A stretch of DNA of 64,000 bases from Bugula neritina (Eukaryota; Animalia; Bryozoa): the NCBI GenBank assembly GCA_964035545.1, contig OZ037766.1, positions 29,700,640 to 29,764,639 on the forward strand, written 5' to 3'. The position numbers and the translations under genes are program-made. Position 1 is the stretch's first letter. Each line of letters opens with the position of its first letter. This document shows, piece by piece, positions 1,676-29,739 of this stretch. A model generated the notes under the pieces. The model searched no databases. It had not been told where the DNA came from and saw only the letters and a list, made by a program, of their open reading frames with translations.

Positions 1676-2704
1676 TTAGTTAGCCTTCTTAACACCATTG
1701 TACGCCATATTGTTGTGGGCGCTGTTGCCATTGCAGTAACGACGGTGGTGGTCCAAACCAGATGTTTTACCCCTTTGAACAGAATGCATTTTCCGGATGT
1801 AGTAGAGAGTTACCAAAGCTTTTGTGAGAGCTGCAAGAGACACTAGCAGGGTACAGTTTGGTATCTCAATGAAGGTGTGGCCAGATTCATAGTCAGCCAT
1901 CAGCCCTTTAAGCTTGAAATACGTTCCGAGAGCTACGAATACATGGAATATCTGATGGCTGTGGAAGTATACATTGAAATATCCCGGAAATGCAAGTTCA
2001 GGAAAATGGCTGCTGTAAAATCCAAAAGTGAAGACGGCATCAATAAAATGCCGGTAATAATGTACAGTCCCATCCTTAGCGTCATATTCCATAGTGACTC
2101 TGTAGAAAAGGGGGCTCATTGAAATTACATAGGAAAGGACAAATGGTAGCAGTCTCATAAGTTTACACGCCAGGCCGAACTTTGGAAATCGAGATTTACA
2201 AGCTAAGGAGACGGCGAGTAAAGTGCTAAGAAAATTTGCAGCAATAAAGGACTGTTCTACTCGAGTGGACCTCCAGCGGTCAGGGAAAGCATAGGACAGG
2301 TTGCTAATGGCAGTGACAAAGGCATACACGCATATGCCGTAGTAGTCTATCATAAAACCAACATGTTGAGAAAGTTCATTCATGGAGTTGAAGGTATGAG
2401 CAAGAACGCTGGTGGTTGAGTAGAGACAGGAAGATAGAAACATGAATAGTAGTGGACGAAGTGCAACATCGGTGAGCAAGTTGAGTGAAGAAGACGTATA
2501 GCACAAATAACCTAAGAAAAAAGCTAAAGCACCAAGATGTGTCCAGATGTTGAGAGTTTCATTGTGGAGCTCAAAGATGCTGACTAAACTCTCTTTCACG
2601 GAGATGCCCGGTTTTCGGTAGCCTCCAACAATCCCTGGTTCCCAAAAGAACTCTGGTATTTCTGTGCTAGTATACTTATGGGAGCGTCCTCGTTCACAGC
2701 CCAT
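1676..2704 (-). CDS. PAQR family (HlyIII/CREST) 7-TM protein, membrane progestin receptor-like, 342 aa, intronless CDS
   Basis: PAQR motifs present: EPGIVGGYR, HNETLNIWTH, SVLAHTF, DYYGI, FPE..FPG.F...HSHQIFH. Multiple hydrophobic segments. Confidence 0.93.
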   Translation of the reverse strand: MGCERGRSHKYTSTEIPEFFWEPGIVGGYRKPGISVKESLVSIFELHNETLNIWTHLGALAFFLGYLCYTSSSLNLLTDVALRPLLFMFLSSCLYSTTSVLAHTFNSMNELSQHVGFMIDYYGICVYAFVTAISNLSYAFPDRWRSTRVEQSFIAANFLSTLLAVSLACKSRFPKFGLACKLMRLLPFVLSYVISMSPLFYRVTMEYDAKDGTVHYYRHFIDAVFTFGFYSSHFPELAFPGYFNVYFHSHQIFHVFVALGTYFKLKGLMADYESGHTFIEIPNCTLLVSLAALTKALVTLYYIRKMHSVQRGKTSGLDHHRRYCNGNSAHNNMAYNGVKKAN

Positions 2705-6973: not shown

Positions 6974-9900
6974 CTAAATTTTGTTGCTGCATGAACTATA
7001 AATTTCTTCTCTCAGTTCCTTTACAGCCTGCATCATATTAGACAGCTTCTGATGCAGGCAATCCTTTGGAAGAAGACCTAGCCCACAATCTGGGGCTAAG
7101 ATTAGTCTATCTCCTGGCATATAGTTCAATGCTTCTCTAATACGCTCCTGTAAAGCCAAAAAGATAAGATGTATAAATATAAAGTATATCAATAAGAGAA
7201 AATTTATCAGAGTTATCTTCTCTATAAATGATGACATCTTAAAAATATTTCTCATTATAGGCCTTCATATGTATATGAGCAAAGTTATTGCATGCATACT
7301 GATGATTATATACTTCAAATTATGTATGAAGATACCATAGAATACTTTAATCTAATAAATATCACATAATATATTAACATAATACAACATAAAATAGCAA
7401 AATATAGTTAATATTTTTGTTTAAGCTGTGGAAATAATTTTAGAAACAATTTTGAGCTTTGAAGCCCAAGTTGCATTATTTTCTTTACATATATCTGAAA
7501 CTATTTAATAGATATAATAAAACTATTGTACCTTAAAATTTATCTCTATGTGCTATGTAATATATTATATTGAATTATAATATAAATTCACCTTAATATA
7601 AGGTACGCTCTCCACTGCCGATTTACAAACAGCTATCACACCCAACATGATTCTTGTGTCTTTGTACCTGCACATGAGCATATCCCGTGTTAATTATAAT
7701 TAATTATTGAATTGATGTGATAACATTATTCCATGCTCCACCATATAGACAGGTTGGTTAATAGACATTGAAGTTGAAAAATTACGGCTGTATAATTTTT
7801 ATAAATCATATACAGTACATTCACAAATATATTTTATGACTTCAAAATTCAAATTGATTAGCCTATACAGCAATTCAGCACTCCTATGAAATTGATTGAA
7901 TTATTTCTAAAATATGTATTGACTAATTCAATTGACCTTGACAAGACCTCAAGGTCAAGGTCACAGTGAGCTCCTTCTATGGATATAGCAGAGGCTCCCA
8001 TCTTGTCAAGTTTCTCGGCTAGGGTCGTGTAGATGTTAGGGTTTGCATTTACATAGTCGGTCTGGTCAAGATACACTGGATATCCGCAGCAGATGTGAAC
8101 AGTGCTACAGAATATACAGTATAGTAATACAGAATACACAGGACAGTATTACAGAACATACAGTATAGTATTACAAAATATACAAGGCAGAAAATATTCA
8201 TAATAGTATATATAAACCTGAATACATCCTTTGGCATAGTCTTTAATACCGAAGAGAGAATTTCTATTCCATATTCCAAAGCTTCAGAGGGTTTCCTTGC
8301 AAAAACTGGCTCATCAATCTGAATGAACTTACAGCCTCTCTTTACCAACTCTGAAATTTCTGTCTTCAGGCATTCGGCCAGATTCAAACAAGACTCTTTT
8401 TCAGTCTCAAAATATCTGCCAAAAAAAGAAAACATTAAATTAAAATCTTTATGACTAATAGTTTTGCCATTTTTCAAAATACTCAAATATTATATTTACA
8501 TTAGTTAGTACACTGACTGCCCTCCATCTGGTTACAGTGGAATGACGATCACTGTACCTGGAAGCTAGCTATTATAGCTCCCCAGACACAATGAATGAAA
8601 CCAATGCAGATGTTGCGCAAAAGCAGCCAGTAGAAAAAATTCCTCTCAGGCTTTTTATTGCATTTACCTGGTCAGCTGATGAAATATTTTAGAGGATAAA
8701 TCAATGTAATTGGTTTGGTTACAGCCATGCAAATATAATTTTGACTTTTTTTACCAGCTAATTGATTTTAATTTTCAGTTTATATAATTAGCTATAAGCT
8801 GACTTTTTTAATCTAAATATGTATGTCACCAGCAGCTATTTGCAAGTCCTGATGTACACTGGATTCAACTACGGAAAGTTAGAAAGTTACATCTTGAGTT
8901 TTATCTTAATTCCATTAGGCAATAAATATTTTAGTCTTCAATAAGTGTGTTCATGTAGCTTATAGTTGAACTCATATCATCTTCTGCTGGTAGTGTGACA
9001 GCTATTTTGATTGGTTAAATTACATTGTGTGAACCTATCATACCTTCTGCCAGTAGTGTTGGTGATTGTCATTGGTCCAGGTATGGTGACTTTCACTGGT
9101 GTATCAGTCAGCTTCTGGCAATTCTCCCAAATGTCTGCTACAAACCCAACCTTTTCTTCCTTCACTTTGACAGGACCTGGTGCAACCAATAACAGTACAG
9201 GAAATAATTTATAATGTCATTTTGAAATTGGAAGCATTTAGGTTCTAACTAATATGGTTAAGTTTCGTCAAAAGAAGTTGCCTTTTTCATTGATTTTTTT
9301 CTTTGTAAAACAGTATTTTACCTAAATTATCATTCTTCCAATTTTTTTACCTTATAATTTATTTCAACATGCAATTTGGGTTTGAAACAAAACATAAACA
9401 AACATATATATGCATAATGCTATTAATAACGGTAATTTAGTCCAAACATTATAAATAAGTATACAATGTATCAATATTTAAACTTGAAGATTTTCAAGAT
9501 CGTTATTTGATTAGTTAAAATTTATTTGTTTTATATTTTAAATGTCAGTTGTAAATTCAGCTGTTCACAGCAACACCATAATATAACGGATCAAAGTTTT
9601 ATTTGAACGCAGACTATGTTACTAAAATTTATTAATTGGCTGCAAAATTTTAACAAAGTTGTGAGTAAAATTTGTCAATTAGTCAGTCAGTTGTTAGACA
9701 TTATTAAAAGATAAAACCTCTATAGATATTGTGGTAAAAGTGTGGTATTGTGATTCCACAGTAGCTCCCTGCATAGTTTAATGTGGGTATAGCACTTGCG
9801 AGTTTGAAGACTGCTGAATCGATTCGTGGTGAGGACATTTCCTTTACAATAGAGTTTCTGTTATTTGGTTCCATTTTACTAAATTAATTCTTGGTTGCAC

Positions 9901-10817
9901 TTGGCCATGTTATATATTTATATATACCTGTGATCAGTGGTAGTACCCCTTTACGTGCTCCATTTCTGTAAGTGATTGTCTCAGCATTACTAAAGTCTAC
10001 ATTTTCACAGTGACGTAGAAAGTGGAAGACGTAAGTATCTCTGTAGATTTCTCCGTCAGTGATTACATCTATCTCATAAGACACTTGCTTGTCTATCGTC
10101 TGCAACGACAATAACCATTATAACCTAAATTAGTTAAGTGTATGCTCATGGCATGATTTGAGGGAAATTTCTAGAAAAATAGAAGCGGTTAACATACAGA
10201 TATGTTTTGTTTTGACTAGTCTAATACATTTGAGTAAATTTTTGCATAATATAATACAGTGAGCAAAACCTGAAAGAGACTGATTGGTCCTCAATAACAT
10301 GAGTTAAATTTGGAATTGAATCTAGCCACGACTTGGAGCAGTTGTAGTAAAACAAAGCATTCAAACTCACTGGTGCTTTTGATGCTCAAAATTATAAAAC
10401 TGTGCTCTTTTTATTCAACATAGTTTGGCAATATGGTAATCAATGTGAGATTACAATCATAAGAATTACTTCTAACACCACTTACAGTATAAAATATAGT
10501 ATGGTTTGAGCTTCAATGGCTTTTTACTAGATTAAGAAAAACAATATTTACCTTTTTCACGTGGTTTAAAAAGATTTTTCCCATGCTAATATAGGTATTT
10601 ACAGCCTATAGCATTTGTGGTTATAAATCACCTCTTGCTGTGCCTTTTCCATGACTCGGCTGAGTTCTTCTTTCTCCAACTTAGAAAGGCTGTTCATATA
10701 TTCCTCATAAAGTATTGTGGTAAACTGGCCTTTGCCCTCTCTGTACCAGACAGGTGTAGGAAGGTACTCTGGTTTGGGATATACCCCTACCACTGATGTA
10801 GCTAAGTACTTGTCCAT
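6974..10817 (-). CDS. Single-domain MetE-like (cobalamin-independent methionine synthase catalytic domain) protein, copy A, 368 aa
   Basis: Seven in-frame GT-AG exons: 10817-10632, 10099-9928, 9176-9044, 8415-8218, 8104-7937, 7667-7592, 7147-6974. Motifs: TSVVGVYPKP, DVITDGEIYR, KVTIPGPMT, IQIDEP, VHICCGY (Zn HxC), ISIE, LAPDCGLG. Confidence 0.93.
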
Positions 10818-13102
10818 CTTATCTACGGCGGTGAAAGATTTGAAGTTAGTGCCTGAAGTATTGGTTTGAATAGACCACAGGCAAACTAAAAGATCAAGTA
10901 AATGCAGCTATAATGCTATAGATGCAGCTATTCATTCATGCAGCTCTTTGTGTGTCTTTATATAAAGCAGCTTACAACAATGCGTGATAATAGTTCGTAC
11001 AAACCATTCTGATCAAATAACATTCATAACCAATGATTTCAATGCCACATAAAAAAAATCCATGGGTCTTGTGATTAATGGAACCATCATGTTGATTGGA
11101 TTGAATCTAACTAGTTTTTGGCTTTATCTGATTTTAATTAATTAAAATTAATTGGATTAAAATAAATTGCAATAAAATAGCCAGGTGTCAAAAAAAACTG
11201 TTTTACTTATCTCAATAGTAGTAAGACTTGTAATATACTTTATTCTAAAGCTAAAAGGCTTCATTTAATCTATCTTATTCAGCTGACTGAAACTATAACC
11301 AACAACCTGAAGAATATCAATACACTATTAAATTAAACTAAAGTTTAAGATGTTAATGATTTTAAATACAATTTATTTAAATCTACCAAACATGCTAGTT
11401 TTATGTCAGCTATTGTATCTAATATTTGAATAGTAAATCAGCATTCTTTTATCCATTAGTGAAAACAAACAACATGAATAAATAGTAAAATATATTTGAA
11501 CTAAAACACTGCATATCACACCCTTAAAATATACAATATTCATAATGCTTTAAAGTTTTTTTTACATTGTTTTTCTATATAACCCATTCTGTTTGTTTTA
11601 AATCAACAGCACATATAGGGTAATACGCAATACCAACAGTTTCAGGGATATCAAACTGATGAAAAAAGAATTAAAATTTCAGCAGCTTAGGCTTACCCTT
11701 ACTCTCTGAGTACAACCATGCAAGAGTGTGCGAGTAGCAGTGTGGTGTTGCTTGAGATTTTTGTAACTTTTAATGTAACTCAACTGCTACATTGCCGATA
11801 GAAGGTATGCAATAATCTGTATCAAAATCTCATGCAGATTCAATCAATATCCATCTATATGACGTAAGAGTCATCCAAGACATAGTAAACGGTGTTTTTC
11901 CGGTCAAGTACACAATACTTGAGATAAATTTTTCTAACTACACATATAACAGCTGTCAATATGCACATGCTGATAACATTTGAGAGGTGTGATCTGTGCG
12001 TGTTTTACAGGCATGGGCCCTAGCCTTCTGCAAACCCCTTTTTACTCCGGATGTAACTATAAATCAATAAATGCTGCAAAGATTCAAGGCTTTAAATTTG
12101 AAACAAAAGAGAAGCCAAACTATAGGCACTACCGTAGCTACTTGTTATTTATAGCATACCAACGCCTATGAGCCGTTTTTAAAAGTATCTTATAATTCGA
12201 GCATAATATTAAGATCTTATACCCAATAAGATAGTAGAAAATTATATGTAACTTAATAGAACCCAAGTAGAAGTGTTGGGAAAGTTTCATGCAGCTAAAA
12301 AGCAAGCTGTTGTTTTATTAACAAAGCTGCTATATTTACACTTGCTAAGGCTAAGGCATTCAGACAGAAAAGCGCTACATATTAGAGTACCGCTGTAAGG
12401 GCCAATGTGCTTACTGTAGCAGTGCAGTATGCAAACATAAAGATATACAATAAAGCTTGTTTGAGTCAGAGGCTTTGTAGAAATGCTCTATCAGTATTCA
12501 AGTATGGCATATGTATTAATCAATACAGATGCTAGCATACAAACGAGTATGGTCTAATAATACGATATAGTGCATGATATATATGTATATAGATTTATGG
12601 CGTGATTGGTCAATTGTCATGCTGATAATATATTAGGTTAGTCTAGAATAAAACAATATTGAATTGCTGAAAATTGTGCTCAAGTTTTCTTTTAGAGACA
12701 GCTTCATATAAGTTACTGTTATTTTGTCTTGTGCAGCTGACAATTTGACAAACAGAACAAACTTATTGAAGTGAATGAATTTTTGCCCAACACTCATATT
12801 ATAAATATTTAAACACTAATACATCAAAGCTTTTTGCCTATGTTTCATCATCAAATTTGCCAGCAGTGTTTGGGCTGGTTTATGATCTGTAGTGTCATCA
12901 CTCTAGTTAACAGTTGACACCTCCTTTGGTTCGCATTCCAGCCTTGAGGCTAAGTTAGATACAAGCCTAACTTTAGCTCAGTGACTTATATTCCTTACCT
13001 AAAGTAACTCTACTTGGCTACAAGCAGATATTTGTTGGTTAAACTGCTTTTAGCTGCCTATACACAATTTTTAGCAGCTGTTTTGTTTAATCCAATAAGA
13101 TT

Positions 13103-13119
13103 ACAAAACAGCTTTGCAG

Positions 13120-13191
<72 letters not shown>
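13103..13191. repeat. (TA)n microsatellite
   Basis: Nearly perfect TA run. Confidence 0.95.
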
Positions 13192-13192
<1 letters not shown>

Positions 13193-14320
13193 ACGTATTT
13201 AATGGTTTTATCATATACAAAAATGCTATAATATGCTATTTTTAAGGAATTATTGTATCATTATGTCTATTTATATAGACTTGTTTTTGGCAGGTTCAAA
13301 TATTGAAAAACATTGAAATATATGTGAAATGAGCAACATTGTTTTGAAATAAATCTTGATTAAATTTGTCACATTTGTTACACAAAATACACACCTGGAA
13401 ATTTAAATTGTTTAGTTAAGATATTTTGTTGAAAAAACATAAGCTTGTGAGAAGGCAACGTCTATATTGACATAATTCATTGAATGTAGAGGCTGCAGCA
13501 CAACTATTTAGAATTACATATTGGATACAAGAATAAGCTAAATAATTTAAAACTCATCAATTAGTTTGTGAGTTTGTTGGCTGCTACCAAATATTTACAA
13601 GTATAGGAAAGTAACTTGCAGCCTTGCATGCTTGTGAAAGATTGTTTGTTTAAACTTTAAAGTAAGAACTTTCTTTGTATATTAATGAAGCTGCGAAACT
13701 GATTAGTTTTCTATAATTTCTGAAACTGCCAGAAAACCAGATTGAGTGTCAACTTTAGCTAAGCCATAATTATACAAAATATAAGCGATACACATAATGC
13801 ATATATTATTTATACACTGTAGCAAATCGTTTGTTTCTAAATTTGTTATTAATTTCTAAATTAATTTATTTTTAATAAGCCTGATAATTCACATAAAAAT
13901 ACAATTGACATTAGTGATGACAAAGCAATTTTGCATGCAAGGTAAGAATCAAAATAAAAGTTTCAATAAAGATAACTTTGCACTGTGTATAAGCACTAGA
14001 CATTTATAACAACCATGTCCCAATGTTCAAAGTGTAATAAAATTTTCAGTTTTTTAAATTGGTGTAGTAGCAATAGCATTAAGGCACAACCTTTATGTGC
14101 GAATTATAGGATGATAGCTGTGAAAAAATTAAATTGAATTTTAAACTTTATGTTTGTGGCCAAAGTCTGGAGAGACTTATGATCACTGACTTAAGCTAAC
14201 ATACTGATAGTTACAAACAAGCCTAGTTATTGTGGTTTAGAAAGGCAGTTGAATCAGCATGAAAAAATTTATAGTTTGATGATAATATTACAGATGTTTT
14301 TCTCAATTTGAGATGCGTAT

Positions 14321-17300
14321 TCATAAACTACACATTTCTTCTCTCAGTTCCTTTACAGCCTGCATCATGTTAAACAGCTTCTGATGCAGGCAATCCTTTG
14401 GAAGAAGACCTAGCCCACAATCTGGGGCTAAAATTAGCCTATCTCCTGGCATATAGTTCAACGCTTCTCTAATACGTTCCTGTAAAATTAGTACAACAGT
14501 AAAATATATAGTATATCACCATTAAAAAGCATTTCCATGAGCCAATGGAATGAAATATAGTTGTGAAGAATATCACTAGAGTGGCTCTCTCCTAATGAGG
14601 TTGCATAACAAAATACATTGGAAAGTTGGAATAAAATATTATTACATTTTGTTAAAGCATTATTACTAGTAACCTATGAGTAACTCACATTTATAGTTTT
14701 TGTGTTTTAATGTCCCTTTTCGTTTTGAGAACAGTTGGTGACAAACAAGCTACAACTATGGCCTTTTACCATACTGACAACATAGTTTAAGGATGGTTAC
14801 TGTATGTGGCACAGAAACAGTTATAACTGGTAATACTCCTGGTAATGACGGGTTCCAATCCCTAACCAGTATCATATTGATATGGTCTTTAACCACCAGG
14901 CCACAGCTACTCAACAATAGGCTATAAATAACATTATGCAAAAACTGAATTGATCATACCGTATTATAATACAAATGTGTGCAAATTCTTACAATAAATA
15001 ATCATATAAGTATTGTAGGCCAATATAATATATCTGTGTTATGTAATATTTATTGAATTATAATACAAATTCACCTTAATATAAGATACACTCTCCACTG
15101 CCGATTTACAGACAGCTATCACACCCAACATAATTCTTGTGTCTTTGTACCTGCAAAGCAGCATAAGTGTTAATCTTAAGCAACAATAATTATAACAGAC
15201 ATACAACTAGACCAAAGTATAAACATATGGTTGTTATATATGGCATTCTATGCAGCTGCAATAAACCAGGTAAAGCTTCGTATCTGAGCATGTGCTCTAC
15301 TTAGCAACAGCAGTTCTCAAACAGCTTATTCAACTGACCTTGACAAGACCTCAAGGTCAAGGTTACAGTGAGCTCCTTCTATGGATATAGCAGAGGCTCC
15401 CATCTTGTCCAGTTTCCCGGCTAGGATTGTGTAGACTTCAGGATTTGCTTTCTGGTAGTCAGTTTGATCTAGTGAGTCGGGGTAACCACAGCAGATGTGA
15501 ACAGTGCTACAGGATATACAGTAAAGTGTTTTAGAATATACTGCATAGTAATACAGAATATACGGTATAGTAATACAGAGTATATGGTACATTGCTACAG
15601 CATATATACGGTATATTAATACAAAATATACAGTATAGTGCTACAGAATATACAGTATAATAATACAGAATATACGATATAGTAATACATAATATACAGT
15701 ATAGTAATACAGAATATACGGTATAGTAATACAGAGTATATGGTACAATGCTACAGCATATATACGGTATATTAATACAAAATATACAGTATAGTGCTAC
15801 ATAATATACAGTATAATAATACAGAATATACGATATAGTAATACATAATATACAGTATAGTAATACAGAATATACGGTATATAATAATACAGAATATACA
15901 ACATAGTGCTACAGAATATACAGTATGGTAATACAGAATATACAGTATAATATTACAGAATATACAGTATAGTATTACAGAATATACAGTATAGTATTAC
16001 AGAATATACAGTATAGTATTACAGAATATACAGTATAAAATAATACAGAATATACAGTATAGTATTACAGACTATACAGTATAATACTACATAATATACT
16101 GTATAGTAATACAGAATATACAGTATAGTATTACAGAATATACAGTATAGTATTACAGAATATACAGTATAGTATTACAGAATATACAGTATAAAATAAT
16201 ACAGAATATACAGTATAGTATTACAGACTATACAGTATAATACTACAGAATATACAGTATAGTAATACAGAATATACAGTATAGTATTACAGAATATACG
16301 ATATAGTAATACATAATATAAAGTATAGTAATACATAATATACAGTATAGTAATACAGAATATACAACATAGTGCTACAGAATATACAGTATGGTAATAC
16401 AGAATATACAGTATATAATAATACAGAATATACAGTATAGTATAATACATAATATACAGTATAGTAATACATAATATACAGTATAGTAATACAGAATATA
16501 CGGTATATAATAATACAGAATATACAACATAGTGCTACAGAATATACAGTATGGTAATACAGAATATACAGTATAATATTACAGAATATACAGTGTAGTA
16601 TTACAGAATATACAGTATAGTATTACAGAATATACAGTATAGTATTACAGAATATACAGTATAAAATAATACAGAATATACAGTATAGTATTACAGACTA
16701 TACAGTATAATACTACAGAATATACAGTATAGTATTACAGAATATACAGTATAAAATAATACAGAATATACAGTATAGTATTACAGACTATACAGTATAA
16801 TACTACAGAATATACAGTATAGTAATACAGAATATACAGTATAGTATTACAGAATATACGATATAGTAATACATAATATAAAGTATAGTAATACATAATA
16901 TACAGTATAGTAATACAGAATATACAACATAGTGCTACAGAATATACAGTATGGTAATACAGAATATACAGTATATAATAATACAGAATATACAGTATAG
17001 TATAATACATAATATACAGTATAGTAATACATAATATACAGTATAGTAATACAGAATATATGGTATATAATAATACAGAATATACAACATAGTGCAACAG
17101 AATATACAGTATAGTATTACAGAATATACAGTATAGTATTACAGAATATACAGTATAGTATTACAGAATATACAGTATAAAATAATACAGAATATACAGT
17201 ATAGTATTACAGACTATACAGTATAATACTACAGAATATACAGTATAGTATTACAGAATATACAGTATAAAATAATACAGAATATACAGTATAGTATTAC

Positions 17301-20300
17301 AGACTATACAGTATAATACTACATAATATACAGTATAGTAATACAGAATATACAGTATAGTATTACAGAATATACGATATAGTAATACATAATATAAAGT
17401 ATAGTAATACATAATATACAGTATAGTAATACAGAATATACAACATAGTGCTACAGAATATACAGTATGGTAATACAGAATATACAGTATATAATAATAC
17501 AGAATATACAGTATAGTATAATACATAATATACAGTATAGTAATACATAATATACAGTATATAGTAATACAGAATATATGGTATATAATAATACAGAATA
17601 TACAACATAGTGCTACAGAATATACAGTATGGTAATACAGAATATACAGTATATAATAATACAGAATATACAATATAGTATTACAGAATATACAGTATAT
17701 AGTATTACAGAATATACAAGGCAGAAAATATGCATAATATTACATATAAACCTGAATACATCCTCTGGCATAGTCTTTAATACTGAAGAGAGAATTTCTA
17801 TTCCATATTCTAGAGCTTCAGAGGGTTTCCTTGCAAAAACTGGCTCATCAATCTGAATGAACTTACAGCCTCTCTTTACCAACTCTGAAATTTCTGTCTT
17901 CAGACATTCAGCCAGATTCAAACATGACTCTTTTTCAGTTTTAAAAAATCTGCAGGAAAATAAATAAACTTATATTATTTATGACATACAGTTTTCACAA
18001 TCTTCACACATTTTACACTCTGGTTGGTCATATTCAGTAGCAAAACAGAAACTCAAATGTAAATAAACATACTATCAAAAAGCTAGCCACTTGTACAACT
18101 AGAAGAACTGAATACTCAGATGTAGCTAATAAAAAGACAACCGAACTAGCTTGCATATTCTGCACTGAAGTTTTTATACATAAGATATTAAATAGTATTT
18201 TAAGCTATTTGTTACCACATGTAACAAAATTATAGTGTCCGTTAGTAAAATGCACTGTTATTACAAGATAAAAAGCATATTAGATGATTAAATATACTGA
18301 CAAGGCCATTGTCAGATTGTGATTGAAAAATTGTATTTCCATTTCCCCACTCTTGTAGATGGTACTTGGTTAAATTACCTACCATACCTTCTGCCAGTAG
18401 TGTTGGTGATTGTCATTGGTCCAGGCATGGTGACTTTCAGTGGTGTATCAGTCAACTTCTGGCAATTCTCCCAAATGTCTGCTACAAACCCAACCTTTTC
18501 TTCCTTCACTTTGACAGGACCTGGTGCAACCAGTAACAGCACAGGAGATAGTTTATAATGTTATTTGGGTGCATATGCCCGTATTTTTTCTTAGAAAAAA
18601 GAAATGAATATAAAAACTCAGTGATTATATAATATCACAGCATTATGTTACGTTGGTTGAATATGCTTGATCGAAAAACTCAATTCCTACTTTCAAAATA
18701 AAACATTTTATGTAAAACATTAAAACAGTGTCATGTGAATTTTCTTTGGCCTCAATGTTAAAATTTTCTTAACATTCAAAGCACCAGTTGTGGACATTTG
18801 AAATGATAGTTTAACCAAGTTTCCTTGATAAGTGAGATTTTGCAATCATAGCATGATGTCCAAACACATACCTGTAATCAGTGGCAGCACTCCGTGACAC
18901 GCCCCATTTCTGAAAGGGATTGTTTCAGCATTACTAAAGTCTACATTTTCACAGTGACGTAGAAAGTGGAAGATGTAAGTATCTCTGTAGATTTCTCCGT
19001 CAGTGATAACATCTATTCCATAAGACACTTGTTTGTCTATCGTCTGCAACAATATTCACACTGTCTAGTCTGCAACAATTATATAGTATAAAGCGGTGTT
19101 GGGCAAGAATAGCAAATTTCAATATTAAGGCTCGGTGTGGGGGTTGAGAGTTTGGAATGAGGGGTATAGGTTTAGGGATGAGGGTTTGATCAGGATTGGG
19201 AGTTTAGAAAAATTTCACATCTGTGTGCCATTTTTATCTTCTTTTCCATTTGTGCCATTTTTATCTGTACCATTATTACCTGTACCATTATTACCTGTAC
19301 CATTTTTACCTGTGCCATTTTTACCCAGAATCAGTAGAGCACACTACTTACCTTCAAGCTGAAGGAATCAAATGCATTTATGTCAGTTATCATAATTAAG
19401 TGAAGTAAAAAGAACACAGAGAGAAATATTAGTGCAGCTCGTGCACTAAAGTTGTTCGCAGCGCCTTTTATTGTCGTTATAGCCTGCACTACACCTCTAA
19501 TAGTTGTTAGACCTGCACTTATTTTGATAAAATTGAAAATTCATCAGATTAGTGTAAGCTGAACAATATTTGGTTGTAGCTCTGAAACCACTTAGTTGTT
19601 CAGTCAACACTACTTTTCACTATTATTATGTAACCATCATCACTAGATCTGAATGAGGCTGACCGGTGGTTGATGGGAGCAGAAAGTGAGATCAATGCTA
19701 CAACTAATTAATATATATATTCAAACAAAATTTTATTTACATAAGAATTATGGAACCATTGGCAGTTGTTCACCTAACAACATTATTCGTTCACATGTGC
19801 ACTAATGATGATCACAAAGCTTTATAGGAATTGCTAGGATGGAGTGCACACTCAAGTTGAACCCTACATTTGGGTCAATCCAAATAGTGCTTCCCAGTTA
19901 GATGCCATTTATACATTTTACGCGCAATTTATTTGAATACTATTGAAATATATGTATATTTAAATAAATTTAAAATATTTTCAAATAGCTTGCTACCAGA
20001 CTGATATTAAACATTGCCCCACCCTGTTTATCAAAAACTAAGGCTGCAGTTGAATTTATTAACAAAAAAATTCCAACTGCACATATCTCTTCCATGGGCA
20101 GTTTAGGCTTCACTAGTCAATTCCATTCATGGAAAGGAAAGCCAACTAATTTAAAATGTGTGTAAAAGAGAGATCAGGGAGATGCACCATTAAACTCCAA
20201 TGTACTCAGTTATTAGCAAATGTGTTTCAAACAAGAAGCCTAAAATTAACAATGAAACAAGCCACTGAATAGTCTGATCAGGGGAACCACTTCAAAAGCC

Positions 20301-23004
20301 TAAGTAAGTTGTGTAAGCTATCTGCTGGAACAAAAGAAAATGTTGCATAACAGAGCTATAGTACAGAAATATTTAAATTGTAATTCAATGGGGAGAACCT
20401 GGCTTACCAAGCAATGACAGAGCATAGCAATTGTTATTACATAACAGCACATAGTTTTCAGTCAGGTCTATTGACAGAAGAAATATTCTGCCGGCATAGT
20501 GAACACCAGAAGCTCAGACTAAGAGGTTGTGCTTTGAGATTCAGTAAATTTGTGCTTCCAAACAACCTCACAACATGGAAGACATTGAATCATTAATTTT
20601 AATCAGATGGGTAAAGATTGCAGTTACCTCTTAGAGATAGAAGATGATCACTTTCTTTCAGGGTTTGGAACTGAAGTCATTGCAGCAAAAGGTAAGCTCA
20701 ATCATTTGATATCACAATGACAGTATGACTATTGCTGTAGACAGTTAATTAATTTTGTGCAACTATAACTTTGAAGACCACATTGACTGATATTTCCCAA
20801 AACTACTCTATTCTTACAACAATTTGATTCGAGTTTTCCTGTAACCATCTATTTCCAAAAAATTAGCGTTTATTTCCACTTCACCTTCTAGCAATTTGTG
20901 CTAAATTCACTAATTTGAATTCCCCCCCCCCATTGTAGAAGTATTGTTAATAATGCAGTTAAGCAGCCTACAAGTAGTTATCGGCCTTAAGCAGCTGCCA
21001 AGTTGAGTGAGTGAAGTTAGCTTCTTGTTTTATACTTTATAGCTAAGTACCAAAATGAAAATGTCAAAATTAGTGGTGAGTTGGCAAAGTTGATAAATAC
21101 AAAACAATTTTTATAAACTTCCGCACCACCAGTTTATCCTTTTATTTATCTTTGCACAGCACAACTAAATATAAAAACATGTTTAAGTAGCAATATTTTT
21201 CTTGGTAGTACTTTATTTGTTGTTTAATTTATAGACATACTGAAACTTATCTGTTATCTCAATATGAGGGGTCTATATAAAATGCTGACTCTAGCTTAAA
21301 TTGTGGTTCTCTGACATTTTGAGATATTTTGCAGAGAAGCTTCTATTAACTAAACTAATTATGCCCAACAGCTCTTGCATTTGTAATTAAGAAAGAAGTA
21401 AAATAAAATGATCCAAAATTGTTACTAAATTTCGATAAGCTCAAACTGACCCAAACACTACGCAACATAATGATCATAAGTTTGCCAAAGCCTGTACAGT
21501 TATTCAGTTATTATGATGACACTGAAATTATGCTGAGAGATTTATAGCTAGCGTTGTTGATACTATTAGTTTTGGCCTTAGACTTCAGCTTCTACAAAGT
21601 TGAACTTAATTTATTTACGTTGCTTGTGATTGTATATCTTAACGCATTTTTACTGTTCATACTAATACGAGTTTAAATTTTAAACAACTTTTACCTTTTG
21701 TTGTAGATCCCATAACATTTTTCAAGAACATGCACTTAAAGATGCTGAATAGGAGCACAAAAAAGAATTTGACCGCCATCACTACACCTCACCCACTTCT
21801 CAAGAACTCAGCTGCCATTTTTATACTACTCTTTCAGACTTCCCTGGCCACTCAACTCCTCTTGGAGTACTACCACACTTTACTAACCGCTGAAATTAGT
21901 TGTAAAATTTTCCCCTCCCCCTCCCGTACTTGGGTTCCTATCACAGACCTCGGACTTGCACACAGGTGTGTTAACCATTACACACCACAACTGCTTGTTT
22001 ATCGCTACACTACAGAGCAAAAATGTAATGACAGACACTATGGTCTTAGCAGGTTCTGCTAATATTGAGAAAAGTTAACTGAATTTAAAGTCGTAGAAAA
22101 ATTCTGCAAATGTTCATTAATTTTTAAAAGTTAATTTTGTTGCATTTCTTATATTCAACTATTATATACAATAAAATCCACATTACTATACTCTCATACT
22201 GGTTAGAAGTTATAACAAGTTAGTTCAGAATGATCAGAAATAATTTTTTGCAGAAGCTTATTTCCAACAAACATTAGAGCAGCATGGAACATTTATAAGT
22301 TCAGCATTGAATATAACTTAGTAAAACATTGAGCATAACTAAGATCACCATTGAACATAAATAAGATCAACACTGAACATATATTAGATAACCACTGAAC
22401 TTATATTAGATCACTATTGAACATAACTTGGCTCATTGTGATAAATACAAAGAATCAACTTCACAACTCTTTATATCACCATTGATCTAACATACTATTC
22501 ACTGTGAACAGTACCTGGCACTAATTTCTATTCACTGCTGGTCAATTTAGGGATCCAAAAAACGAGAGGTTTTAGTTGTCAGCTAATGTTCACTCTAACA
22601 CTAATATTTCTCTCTGTGAAAGAACTAATAGCTTAAGTGCAGAAATCAATGCAATTGTTTGAACAAATTAGTGATGACTGTTTTATGACTTAAAATACAA
22701 AAGTACTTTTAGTGGGACTTGACGTGTAAACCAAACAAATAATTGCTACAATCCAGAAAGCTGTAGCCCACATTCCAAATCTGATCAGATAACTCCTTGT
22801 AGTATGGCGATAAATCACCTCTTTTTGTGCCTTTTCCATGACTTGATTGAGTTCTTCTTTCTCCAACTTAGAAAGGCTGTTCATATATTCCTCATAAGGT
22901 CTTGCAGTGAACTGACCTTTGCCCTCTTTGTACCAGACAGGTGTAGGGAGGTAATCTGGTTTGGGATACACCCCTACCACTGATGTAGCTAAGTACTTGT
23001 CCAT
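14321..23004 (-). CDS. Single-domain MetE-like protein, copy B, 363 aa (tandem paralog)
   Basis: Exons 23004-22819, 19043-18872, 18520-18388, 17949-17752, 15506-15339, 15150-15075, 14479-14321. Exons 1-6 have the same lengths and phases as copy A. HICCG, SIE and PDCG are intact. Confidence 0.93.
15507..17720. repeat. ~22-bp minisatellite (TATACAGTATAGTATTACAGAA) filling intron 4 of MetE-like copy B, with ~520-560 bp higher-order periodicity
   Basis: Direct inspection. Near-identical spurious ORFs recur at 16175, 16735 and 17251. Confidence 0.95.
19130..19326. repeat. G-rich tract followed by ~15-bp tandem repeat (CTGTGCCATTTTTAT/C); probable transposon-derived repeat
   Basis: GGGGTTGAGAGTTTGG..GGTTTAGGG tract followed by ~6 copies of a 15-mer. 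Confidence 0.6.

Positions 23005-24356: not shown

Positions 24357-29739
<5,383 letters not shown>

Follow-up and report, generated by a model that had tools for sequence, protein, structure and literature searches.

The window analysed here, 64,000 nucleotides of the bryozoan Bugula neritina (GenBank assembly GCA_964035545.1, contig OZ037766.1, positions 29,700,640 to 29,764,639 of the forward strand), carries two adjacent intron-containing genes, named A and B, which encode the catalytic barrel of cobalamin-independent methionine synthase (MetE) without its folate-binding half. These genes are best explained as functional tandem paralogues within the 'cobalamin-independent methionine synthase II' family, whose members have the Meth_synt_2 domain only. 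We infer that their most likely function is that of a zinc-dependent homocysteine methyltransferase using a non-folate small-molecule donor. The probability that they encode active zinc-dependent thiol methyltransferases with a donor of this kind is estimated at about 0.5, and that of any particular donor is much lower. The locus is a divergent new member of a catalogued but apparently unstudied family, not a unique animal invention.

Two tandem genes with a single barrel and a complete zinc site

Gene A (6974..10817, minus strand) consists of seven exons (10817-10632, 10099-9928, 9176-9044, 8415-8218, 8104-7937, 7667-7592 and 7147-6974), delimited by splice sites and exon-wise family matches, which together amount to 1107 nucleotides and encode a single Meth_synt_2 barrel of 368 amino acids with one terminal stop; all its introns are of the GT..AG type. 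Gene B (14321..23004, minus strand) also has seven exons (23004-22819, 19043-18872, 18520-18388, 17949-17752, 15506-15339, 15150-15075 and 14479-14321), which were located by aligning the sequence with gene A, have AG/GT flanks and encode 363 amino acids. Its reading frame is intact, its exon lengths and phases are those of gene A except for a shorter last exon, and the two proteins are 91% identical. Checks of splice sites, stop and frame agreed with the coordinates, exon number and lengths that an earlier note on this DNA had given for both genes. Database searches were run exon by exon; the joined models were built from coordinates for the length and stop checks, alignment, trees and the ratio of nonsynonymous to synonymous divergence (dN/dS).

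The exons match the Pfam family Meth_synt_2 (PF01717) in the expected order (exon 2 to profile positions 42-91, exon 4 to 145-178 and exon 7 to 279-323), and exon 7 alone passes the family cut-off (21.9 vs 21 bits). The same domain is carried by full-length relatives that are 41-45% identical to the window proteins. The exon translations also match, again in order, the NCBIfam 'methionine synthase' models of about 340 amino acids, and among solved MetE structures the match of exon 4 is to their C-terminal barrel. The zinc-site motifs HICCG, SIE and PDCG are all present as the earlier note described them. The ligands of gene A, all encoded on the minus strand, are the His and Cys of the HxC pair in HICCG (codons of His233-Ile-Cys235 at 8089..8097, with H233 at 8097-8095 and C235 at 8091-8089; equivalents of His641 and Cys643 of Escherichia coli MetE), Glu273 in SIE (7975..7977; Glu665 equivalent) and Cys332 in PDCG (7085..7087; Cys726 equivalent). 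The four residues are present in both A and B, at columns that are invariant or nearly so in 61 aligned relatives. Of the 65 columns of the same alignment with conservation of 90% or more, gene A keeps 59; it also retains Glu79 and Asp198, the equivalents of Glu484 and Asp599, two residues that hold the homocysteine amino group in MetE and MesD (Price 2021, PMC7857596).

The missing half of MetE is not concealed upstream. The hypothesis of a hidden N-terminal barrel was rejected because the initial methionine of the gene aligns with the N-termini of full-length homologues, the domain Meth_synt_1 (PF08267) has no match across the whole 216-Mb assembly, and gene B is bounded on its 5' side, 1.9 kb upstream, by the end of ABHD18 (24918..28182, minus strand; exons seen at 24918-25130, 27591-27752 and 28042-28182). 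The description of a single-barrel MetE-like enzyme with an intact zinc site and no folate-binding half is thus borne out, upstream exons for an N-terminal barrel having been sought and none found. MetH is encoded in the genome too, as are BHMT-like proteins at several S-methyl_trans loci, so that the window pair is an addition to the usual enzymes and not a replacement for them.

Divergence between the two genes shows the pattern of functional genes long maintained. Genes A and B differ by a synonymous divergence (dS) of 0.237 and a nonsynonymous divergence (dN) of 0.041 (dN/dS 0.17), and the identity of those introns that can be aligned (2, 3, 5 and 6) is only 77-79%; both copies are thus under purifying selection. 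Exons 3-6 of an ortholog lie on a 2.2-kb contig (L034) that comes from a different sequencing run, with 61-69% amino acid identity and with exon lengths (133, 198, 168 and 76), AG/GT borders and phases identical to those of the window genes; the comparison of the window genes with this contig gives a dN of 0.27-0.28 and a saturated dS. Two Joint Genome Institute (JGI) metagenome contigs (L036 and L037, from 3300002729 and 3300003318) carry exons 4-5 with 95-97% protein identity to gene A, and presumably represent a closely related animal whose DNA, as that of the host, entered a symbiont metagenome. Judging from the dN/dS between the copies and from the proportion of family-conserved positions that gene A keeps, both enzymes are probably active.

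The same data bear on the idea that the pair is a catalytically idle relic, a truncated MetE without function as has been proposed for the dinoflagellate homologues. The lack of an N-terminal domain and of an RNA run would fit such a relic, as would the behaviour of the dinoflagellate copies, which neither rescue vitamin B12 auxotrophy nor respond to B12 (Lin 2022, PMC11197592). Against it stand the dN/dS of 0.17 between the paralogues, the dN of 0.27-0.28 beside a saturated dS in the comparison with L034, the intact frames, an exon structure conserved across species at 61-69% identity, the retained active-site residues and the persistence of the family in many phyla with conserved introns, and we consider it highly improbable.

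Turning to the surroundings of the pair, a 22-bp minisatellite of about 99 copies (15508..17718; 83% matches) fills gene B intron 4 almost entirely; gene A intron 4 (113 bp) is made up of a few repeats of this unit, and the depth of the DNA contigs spikes there. Just downstream of gene A lies a single-exon gene of the PAQR/HlyIII family (1676..2704, minus strand; 342 amino acids, 122 bits). The position between two ordinary animal genes, ABHD18 and PAQR, upholds the view that the genes form a tandem pair in an animal chromosome. Bacterial contamination was rejected on the basis of the spliceosomal introns, the size of the contig (33.6 Mb), this position and a G+C content of about 30-33%, like that of the surroundings.

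A family shared by marine invertebrates, dinoflagellates and bacteria

The earlier note had described the pair from this one animal and supposed that similar proteins may exist in other invertebrates. The supposition is correct, and the pair is no oddity of a single species: homologues of about 350 amino acids occur in many marine invertebrates, and also in dinoflagellates and marine bacteria. Family membership was defined by word searches seeded with two full-length relatives. Animal proteins of this length are already annotated as '5-methyltetrahydropteroyltriglutamate--homocysteine methyltransferase-like' in hemichordates (Saccoglossus, Glandiceps, Ptychodera), echinoderms (Strongylocentrotus, Lytechinus, Diadema, Patiria, Acanthaster), amphioxus (Branchiostoma), a brachiopod (Lingula), an annelid (Owenia) and corals (Stylophora, Oculina, Pocillopora). 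The marine-bacterial relatives are annotated as 'cobalamin-independent methionine synthase II family protein' and the dinoflagellate ones as 'B12-independent methionine synthase 2'. For the subfamily of the window, exhaustive searching with exon 4 gave no match above 52% identity that was larger than an exon-sized fragment; many proteins of about 350 amino acids matched this exon at about 50% or less, and no annotated ortholog is on record. The full-length matches over all exons are 35-46% identical to gene A. In the literature searched we found no experimental characterisation of the family, as the earlier note had supposed, and no animal-focused study of Meth_synt_2-only proteins.

The animal homologues resemble the window genes in having only Meth_synt_2, in their motifs (GxYPKP, TDGE, IQxDEP, HxCCGYP, SxE and PDCG), in bearing introns and in being often tandemly duplicated (three adjacent genes in Saccoglossus, locus L014, and two in Branchiostoma, L015). 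They differ in sequence, since the window genes are 41-45% identical to the six aligned animal proteins, which are 49-61% identical among themselves. The bacterial 'cobalamin-independent methionine synthase II' proteins have the same length, motifs and single barrel, with about 40% identity to the window proteins; in contrast to the animal genes, theirs have no introns and often stand at the end of an import operon of the PotABCD type, in marine Alpha- and Gammaproteobacteria, many of them known from sponge-associated metagenome-assembled genomes (MAGs). The dinoflagellate 'B12-independent methionine synthase 2', or N-terminally lacking MetE, is about 42% identical (P0049) and likewise stands without the folate half alongside MetH, but it belongs to a separate, well-supported protist clade, and some copies are fused to other domains (Lin 2022, PMC11197592).

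Among the enzymes of the same fold, canonical MetE (E. coli, Arabidopsis, fungi; about 750 amino acids; TIGR01371 / PRK05222) shares the catalytic C-terminal barrel and the zinc site, whereas the window genes have no Meth_synt_1 barrel and thus no known means of binding methyl-tetrahydrofolate-polyglutamate. The single-barrel core enzymes, MesD (PDB 3RPD) and MesA-C, have the same zinc- and homocysteine-binding residues and do not use methyl-folate. Of the solved structures, that of MesD from Shewanella (3RPD) comes nearest to the family (E 7e-42 with the amphioxus homologue). The kinship to MesA-D that the earlier note suggested nevertheless needs correction where it is taken as membership. 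Full-length family members score 160-214 bits against curated NCBIfam cut-offs of 392-406, which is about half, and in the case of PRK09121 (probably the MesD model; cut-off 392 bits) they score 164-187 bits and the window exons 16-29 bits each. Judged by these curated cut-offs, the family is a relative of MesA-D and not a member. The hosts also differ, those of MesA-C being anaerobes with corrinoid methyl carriers (MtrA or CoFeSP) and that of the window an aerobic animal, as judged from the introns and from the neighbouring ABHD18 and PAQR genes. Finally, BHMT, MmuM and bacterial Bmt resemble the proposed chemistry, in that zinc-activated homocysteine takes a methyl group directly from betaine or a sulfonium compound, but they form a separate Pfam family (S-methyl_trans), of which this genome has its own genes.

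Bacterial gene neighbourhoods and the candidate methyl donor

We surveyed 37 bacterial loci with full flanks, counting neighbouring gene families as recurrent if present in at least three loci. The MetE-like gene ends a PotABCD-like ATP-binding cassette (ABC) importer operon in 16-19 of the 37 loci, and a coenzyme A (CoA)-acylating methylmalonate-semialdehyde dehydrogenase comes next in 11; a dimethylglycine-dehydrogenase-like flavoprotein is encoded nearby in 7 and an omega-aminotransferase in 4. Neither a corrinoid protein nor MesX was among the recurrent families. Many of the hosts are sponge-associated MAGs (Spongiihabitans, Poriferihabitaceae, Kiloniellaceae, Arenicellales). By analogy, this context resembles a pathway in which a methylated amine would be imported, its first methyl group moved to homocysteine as BHMT does with glycine betaine, and its skeleton degraded.

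This bacterial context, the zinc site, the homocysteine-type pocket without a folate barrel and the literature lead us to favour an onium-compound:homocysteine methyltransferase. Homocysteine would be activated on zinc by the core MetE-like enzyme and would be methylated directly by a small compound instead of 5-methyl-tetrahydrofolate; candidate donors are quaternary amines of the betaine type and sulfoniums, for example dimethylsulfoniopropionate (DMSP). Methionine would thus be made without folate or B12, in parallel to MetH and BHMT. Core enzymes of the MetE fold do not use methyl-folate (Price 2021, PMC7857596). Dinoflagellates with only the short form stay B12 auxotrophs and show no B12 regulation of it (Lin 2022, PMC11197592), indicating that the short form is not a stand-in for MetE. 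The earlier proposal of a zinc-dependent thiol alkyltransferase with a probably non-folate donor therefore stands as regards the zinc site and the absence of a folate barrel; the family itself is not peculiar to this animal.

Two other methyl sources known from core enzymes can be weighed against the same survey. In the first, the proteins would be corrinoid-dependent core methionine synthases, taking the methyl group from methylcobalamin or from a methylated corrinoid protein as MesA and MesB do. Methylcobalamin is the methyl source of those core synthases that have been characterised in vitro (Price 2021, PMC7857596), and an animal with MetH needs B12 in any case; on the other hand, MesA-C are confined to strict anaerobes with the corrinoid proteins of the Wood-Ljungdahl pathway or methanogenesis (Price 2021, PMC7857596), the scores of the family members are far below the cut-offs, no corrinoid-protein gene recurs in the bacterial loci and dinoflagellates do not regulate the short form by B12 (Lin 2022, PMC11197592), which leaves this source improbable. 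In the second, activity would depend on oxygen and on a partner protein, the part that MesX plays for MesD. The closeness of structure 3RPD and the fact that PRK09121 is the best NCBIfam match for exon 2 speak for a MesD-like system. It is nonetheless scarcely credible when set against PRK09121 scores of about half the cut-off, the absence of MesX from the recurrent bacterial neighbours and the absence of a match to MesX (DUF1852, PF08908) in the genome, the last being weak evidence as the control genomes of that search also gave none.

Several observations weigh against the reading that we favour. Transcription of genes A and B and their splice junctions are predicted: the only sequencing run found with the locus is a DNA run, since its contigs cover introns, and an RNA run with the locus was sought and none found. 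No assayed member of the family was found in the literature searched, and the dinoflagellate homologues have been read as non-functional (Lin 2022, PMC11197592). The donor is deduced only from the neighbourhoods of bacterial proteins that are about 50% identical to the animal clade and about 40% to the window proteins. To our knowledge animals have no operons, and hence the animal genes themselves provide no context evidence. Two changes near the active site also count here, as the substrate could differ from that of the rest of the family: the window clade has Val (Val12) at the position equivalent to Ser433, which contacts the homocysteine carboxylate in MetE and is Ser or Ala in the relatives, and Gly (Gly274) after the zinc-binding Glu, where 58 of the 61 relatives have Asp.

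These two replacements, together with a long stem branch (0.5-0.8 changes per site) that would fit a change of function, are the arguments for the same fold performing a different reaction, either the alkylation of another thiol, as in epoxyalkane:coenzyme M (CoM) transferase, or demethylation of a methylated metabolite with a non-homocysteine thiol as acceptor. The pocket argues otherwise, given that the equivalents of Glu484 and Asp599 and 91% of the family-conserved positions are kept and that the relatives tolerate Ala at the Ser position, and a different reaction appears distinctly unlikely.

Introns, trees and the origin of the bryozoan pair

Intron positions set the window genes apart from the other animal members. 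Ancestral introns at alignment columns 79 (phase 1), 118 (phase 2), 191 (phase 1) and 299 (phase 1) are found in annelid, sea urchin, hemichordate and amphioxus, and a phase 0 intron at column 272 is also found in coral; the annelid Owenia shares all five of its five introns with deuterostomes. The window introns lie at 91/0, 148/1, 192/2, 259/2, 315/2 and 341/0 (alignment column/phase), and none of the six is identical to an ancestral animal intron, two of them being within 1-3 codons of one. A third MetE-like gene, very divergent, is located on the same contig 10 Mb away (19511500-19517700, plus strand; loci L031/L032). It reads VTCG instead of PDCG, and in a tblastn search over it no match covers the HxC region. 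This copy keeps the phase 2 intron of column 118, within the Cys codon, exactly, and two more introns within a codon and in the same phase, indicating that the lineage retains old introns and that the window pair looks like a copy in which all of them were lost and new ones gained. As judged from these gene structures, the window pair would be a retrocopy or a separately acquired gene rather than a plain vertical ortholog. It would represent a fast-evolved bryozoan lineage of the family with all introns new.

In the trees, the named animal proteins group together in a single clade, with support of 97-98% in the Shimodaira-Hasegawa-like approximate likelihood ratio test (SH-aLRT), and the window pair falls outside it in the free trees. 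The window clade (A, B and L034) has 100% support on a stem of 0.5-0.8 changes per site, and is part of a polytomy with the animal clade and unnamed long-branch sequences, one of them on a bacterial contig. On a bacterial contig (L033:5013-7068), a short MetE-like gene directly follows a gene for a class I S-adenosylmethionine (SAM)-dependent methyltransferase. Another lineage found near the window clade in the free trees comes from metagenomes and metatranscriptomes (P0125, P0356 and P0357) and includes exon-sized genomic fragments; one fragment boundary coincides with an intron of the coral Stylophora (column 321, phase 0), and this lineage is probably another eukaryotic branch of the family.

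Topologies were compared with a manual approximately unbiased (AU) test under LG+F+G4, with tree searches limited to 80 s, and the site-heterogeneous tree was a quick posterior mean site frequency (PMSF) analysis. Two results weigh against a retrocopy or separate acquisition: the union of animals and window as one clade is not rejected (log-likelihood difference, delta lnL, 7.8; p 0.59), nor is a position inside the animal clade, with Lingula plus Owenia (p 0.22). They fit a different origin, in which the pair would be a vertically inherited, fast-evolving ortholog of the animal clade whose introns have turned over wholesale, without a retrocopy or a second transfer. That origin is also consistent with the site-heterogeneous tree, which has the animal clade branching next outside the pair and animal sequences at the shortest path lengths from it, and with the two window introns close to ancestral ones. 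The contrary evidence is the absence of any exactly shared position among the six introns while Owenia shares 5 of 5 with deuterostomes, the presence of another MetE-like gene in the same genome that has kept one ancestral intron exactly and two to within a codon, and the grouping of the pair in the free trees with unnamed long-branch sequences that include the bacterial contig; plain vertical descent is regarded as somewhat unlikely. The trees themselves do not discriminate between descent as a divergent animal lineage and separate acquisition (AU p 0.2-0.6). The bacterial ancestry followed by intron gain that the earlier note proposed is possible for the pair, as its introns differ from the ancestral ones, although the tree does not reject placement in the animal clade.

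Textbook accounts of homocysteine remethylation in animals include only MetH and BHMT. Here, a family of MetE-like zinc enzymes under selection is present in cnidarians, deuterostomes and lophotrochozoans, and it is absent from the curated equivalog models. In its fullest form, our interpretation would join an unrecognised third route from homocysteine to methionine in marine invertebrates, its methyl group stripped from an abundant osmolyte such as a betaine or DMSP and neither folate nor B12 being needed, with a bryozoan second acquisition from a marine microbe, or a retrocopy, followed by six new introns and a tandem duplication; this combination as a whole is unlikely. The main interest lies in the chemistry of the whole animal family and in the bryozoan copies having had all their introns replaced. 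The family suggests an overlooked reaction in marine animals, possibly one that connects the methyl cycle and B12 economy with pools of osmolytes, and the bryozoan pair, a divergent lineage with a fully replaced intron set, is a useful case in which to ask how animals gain introns or acquire a gene repeatedly.

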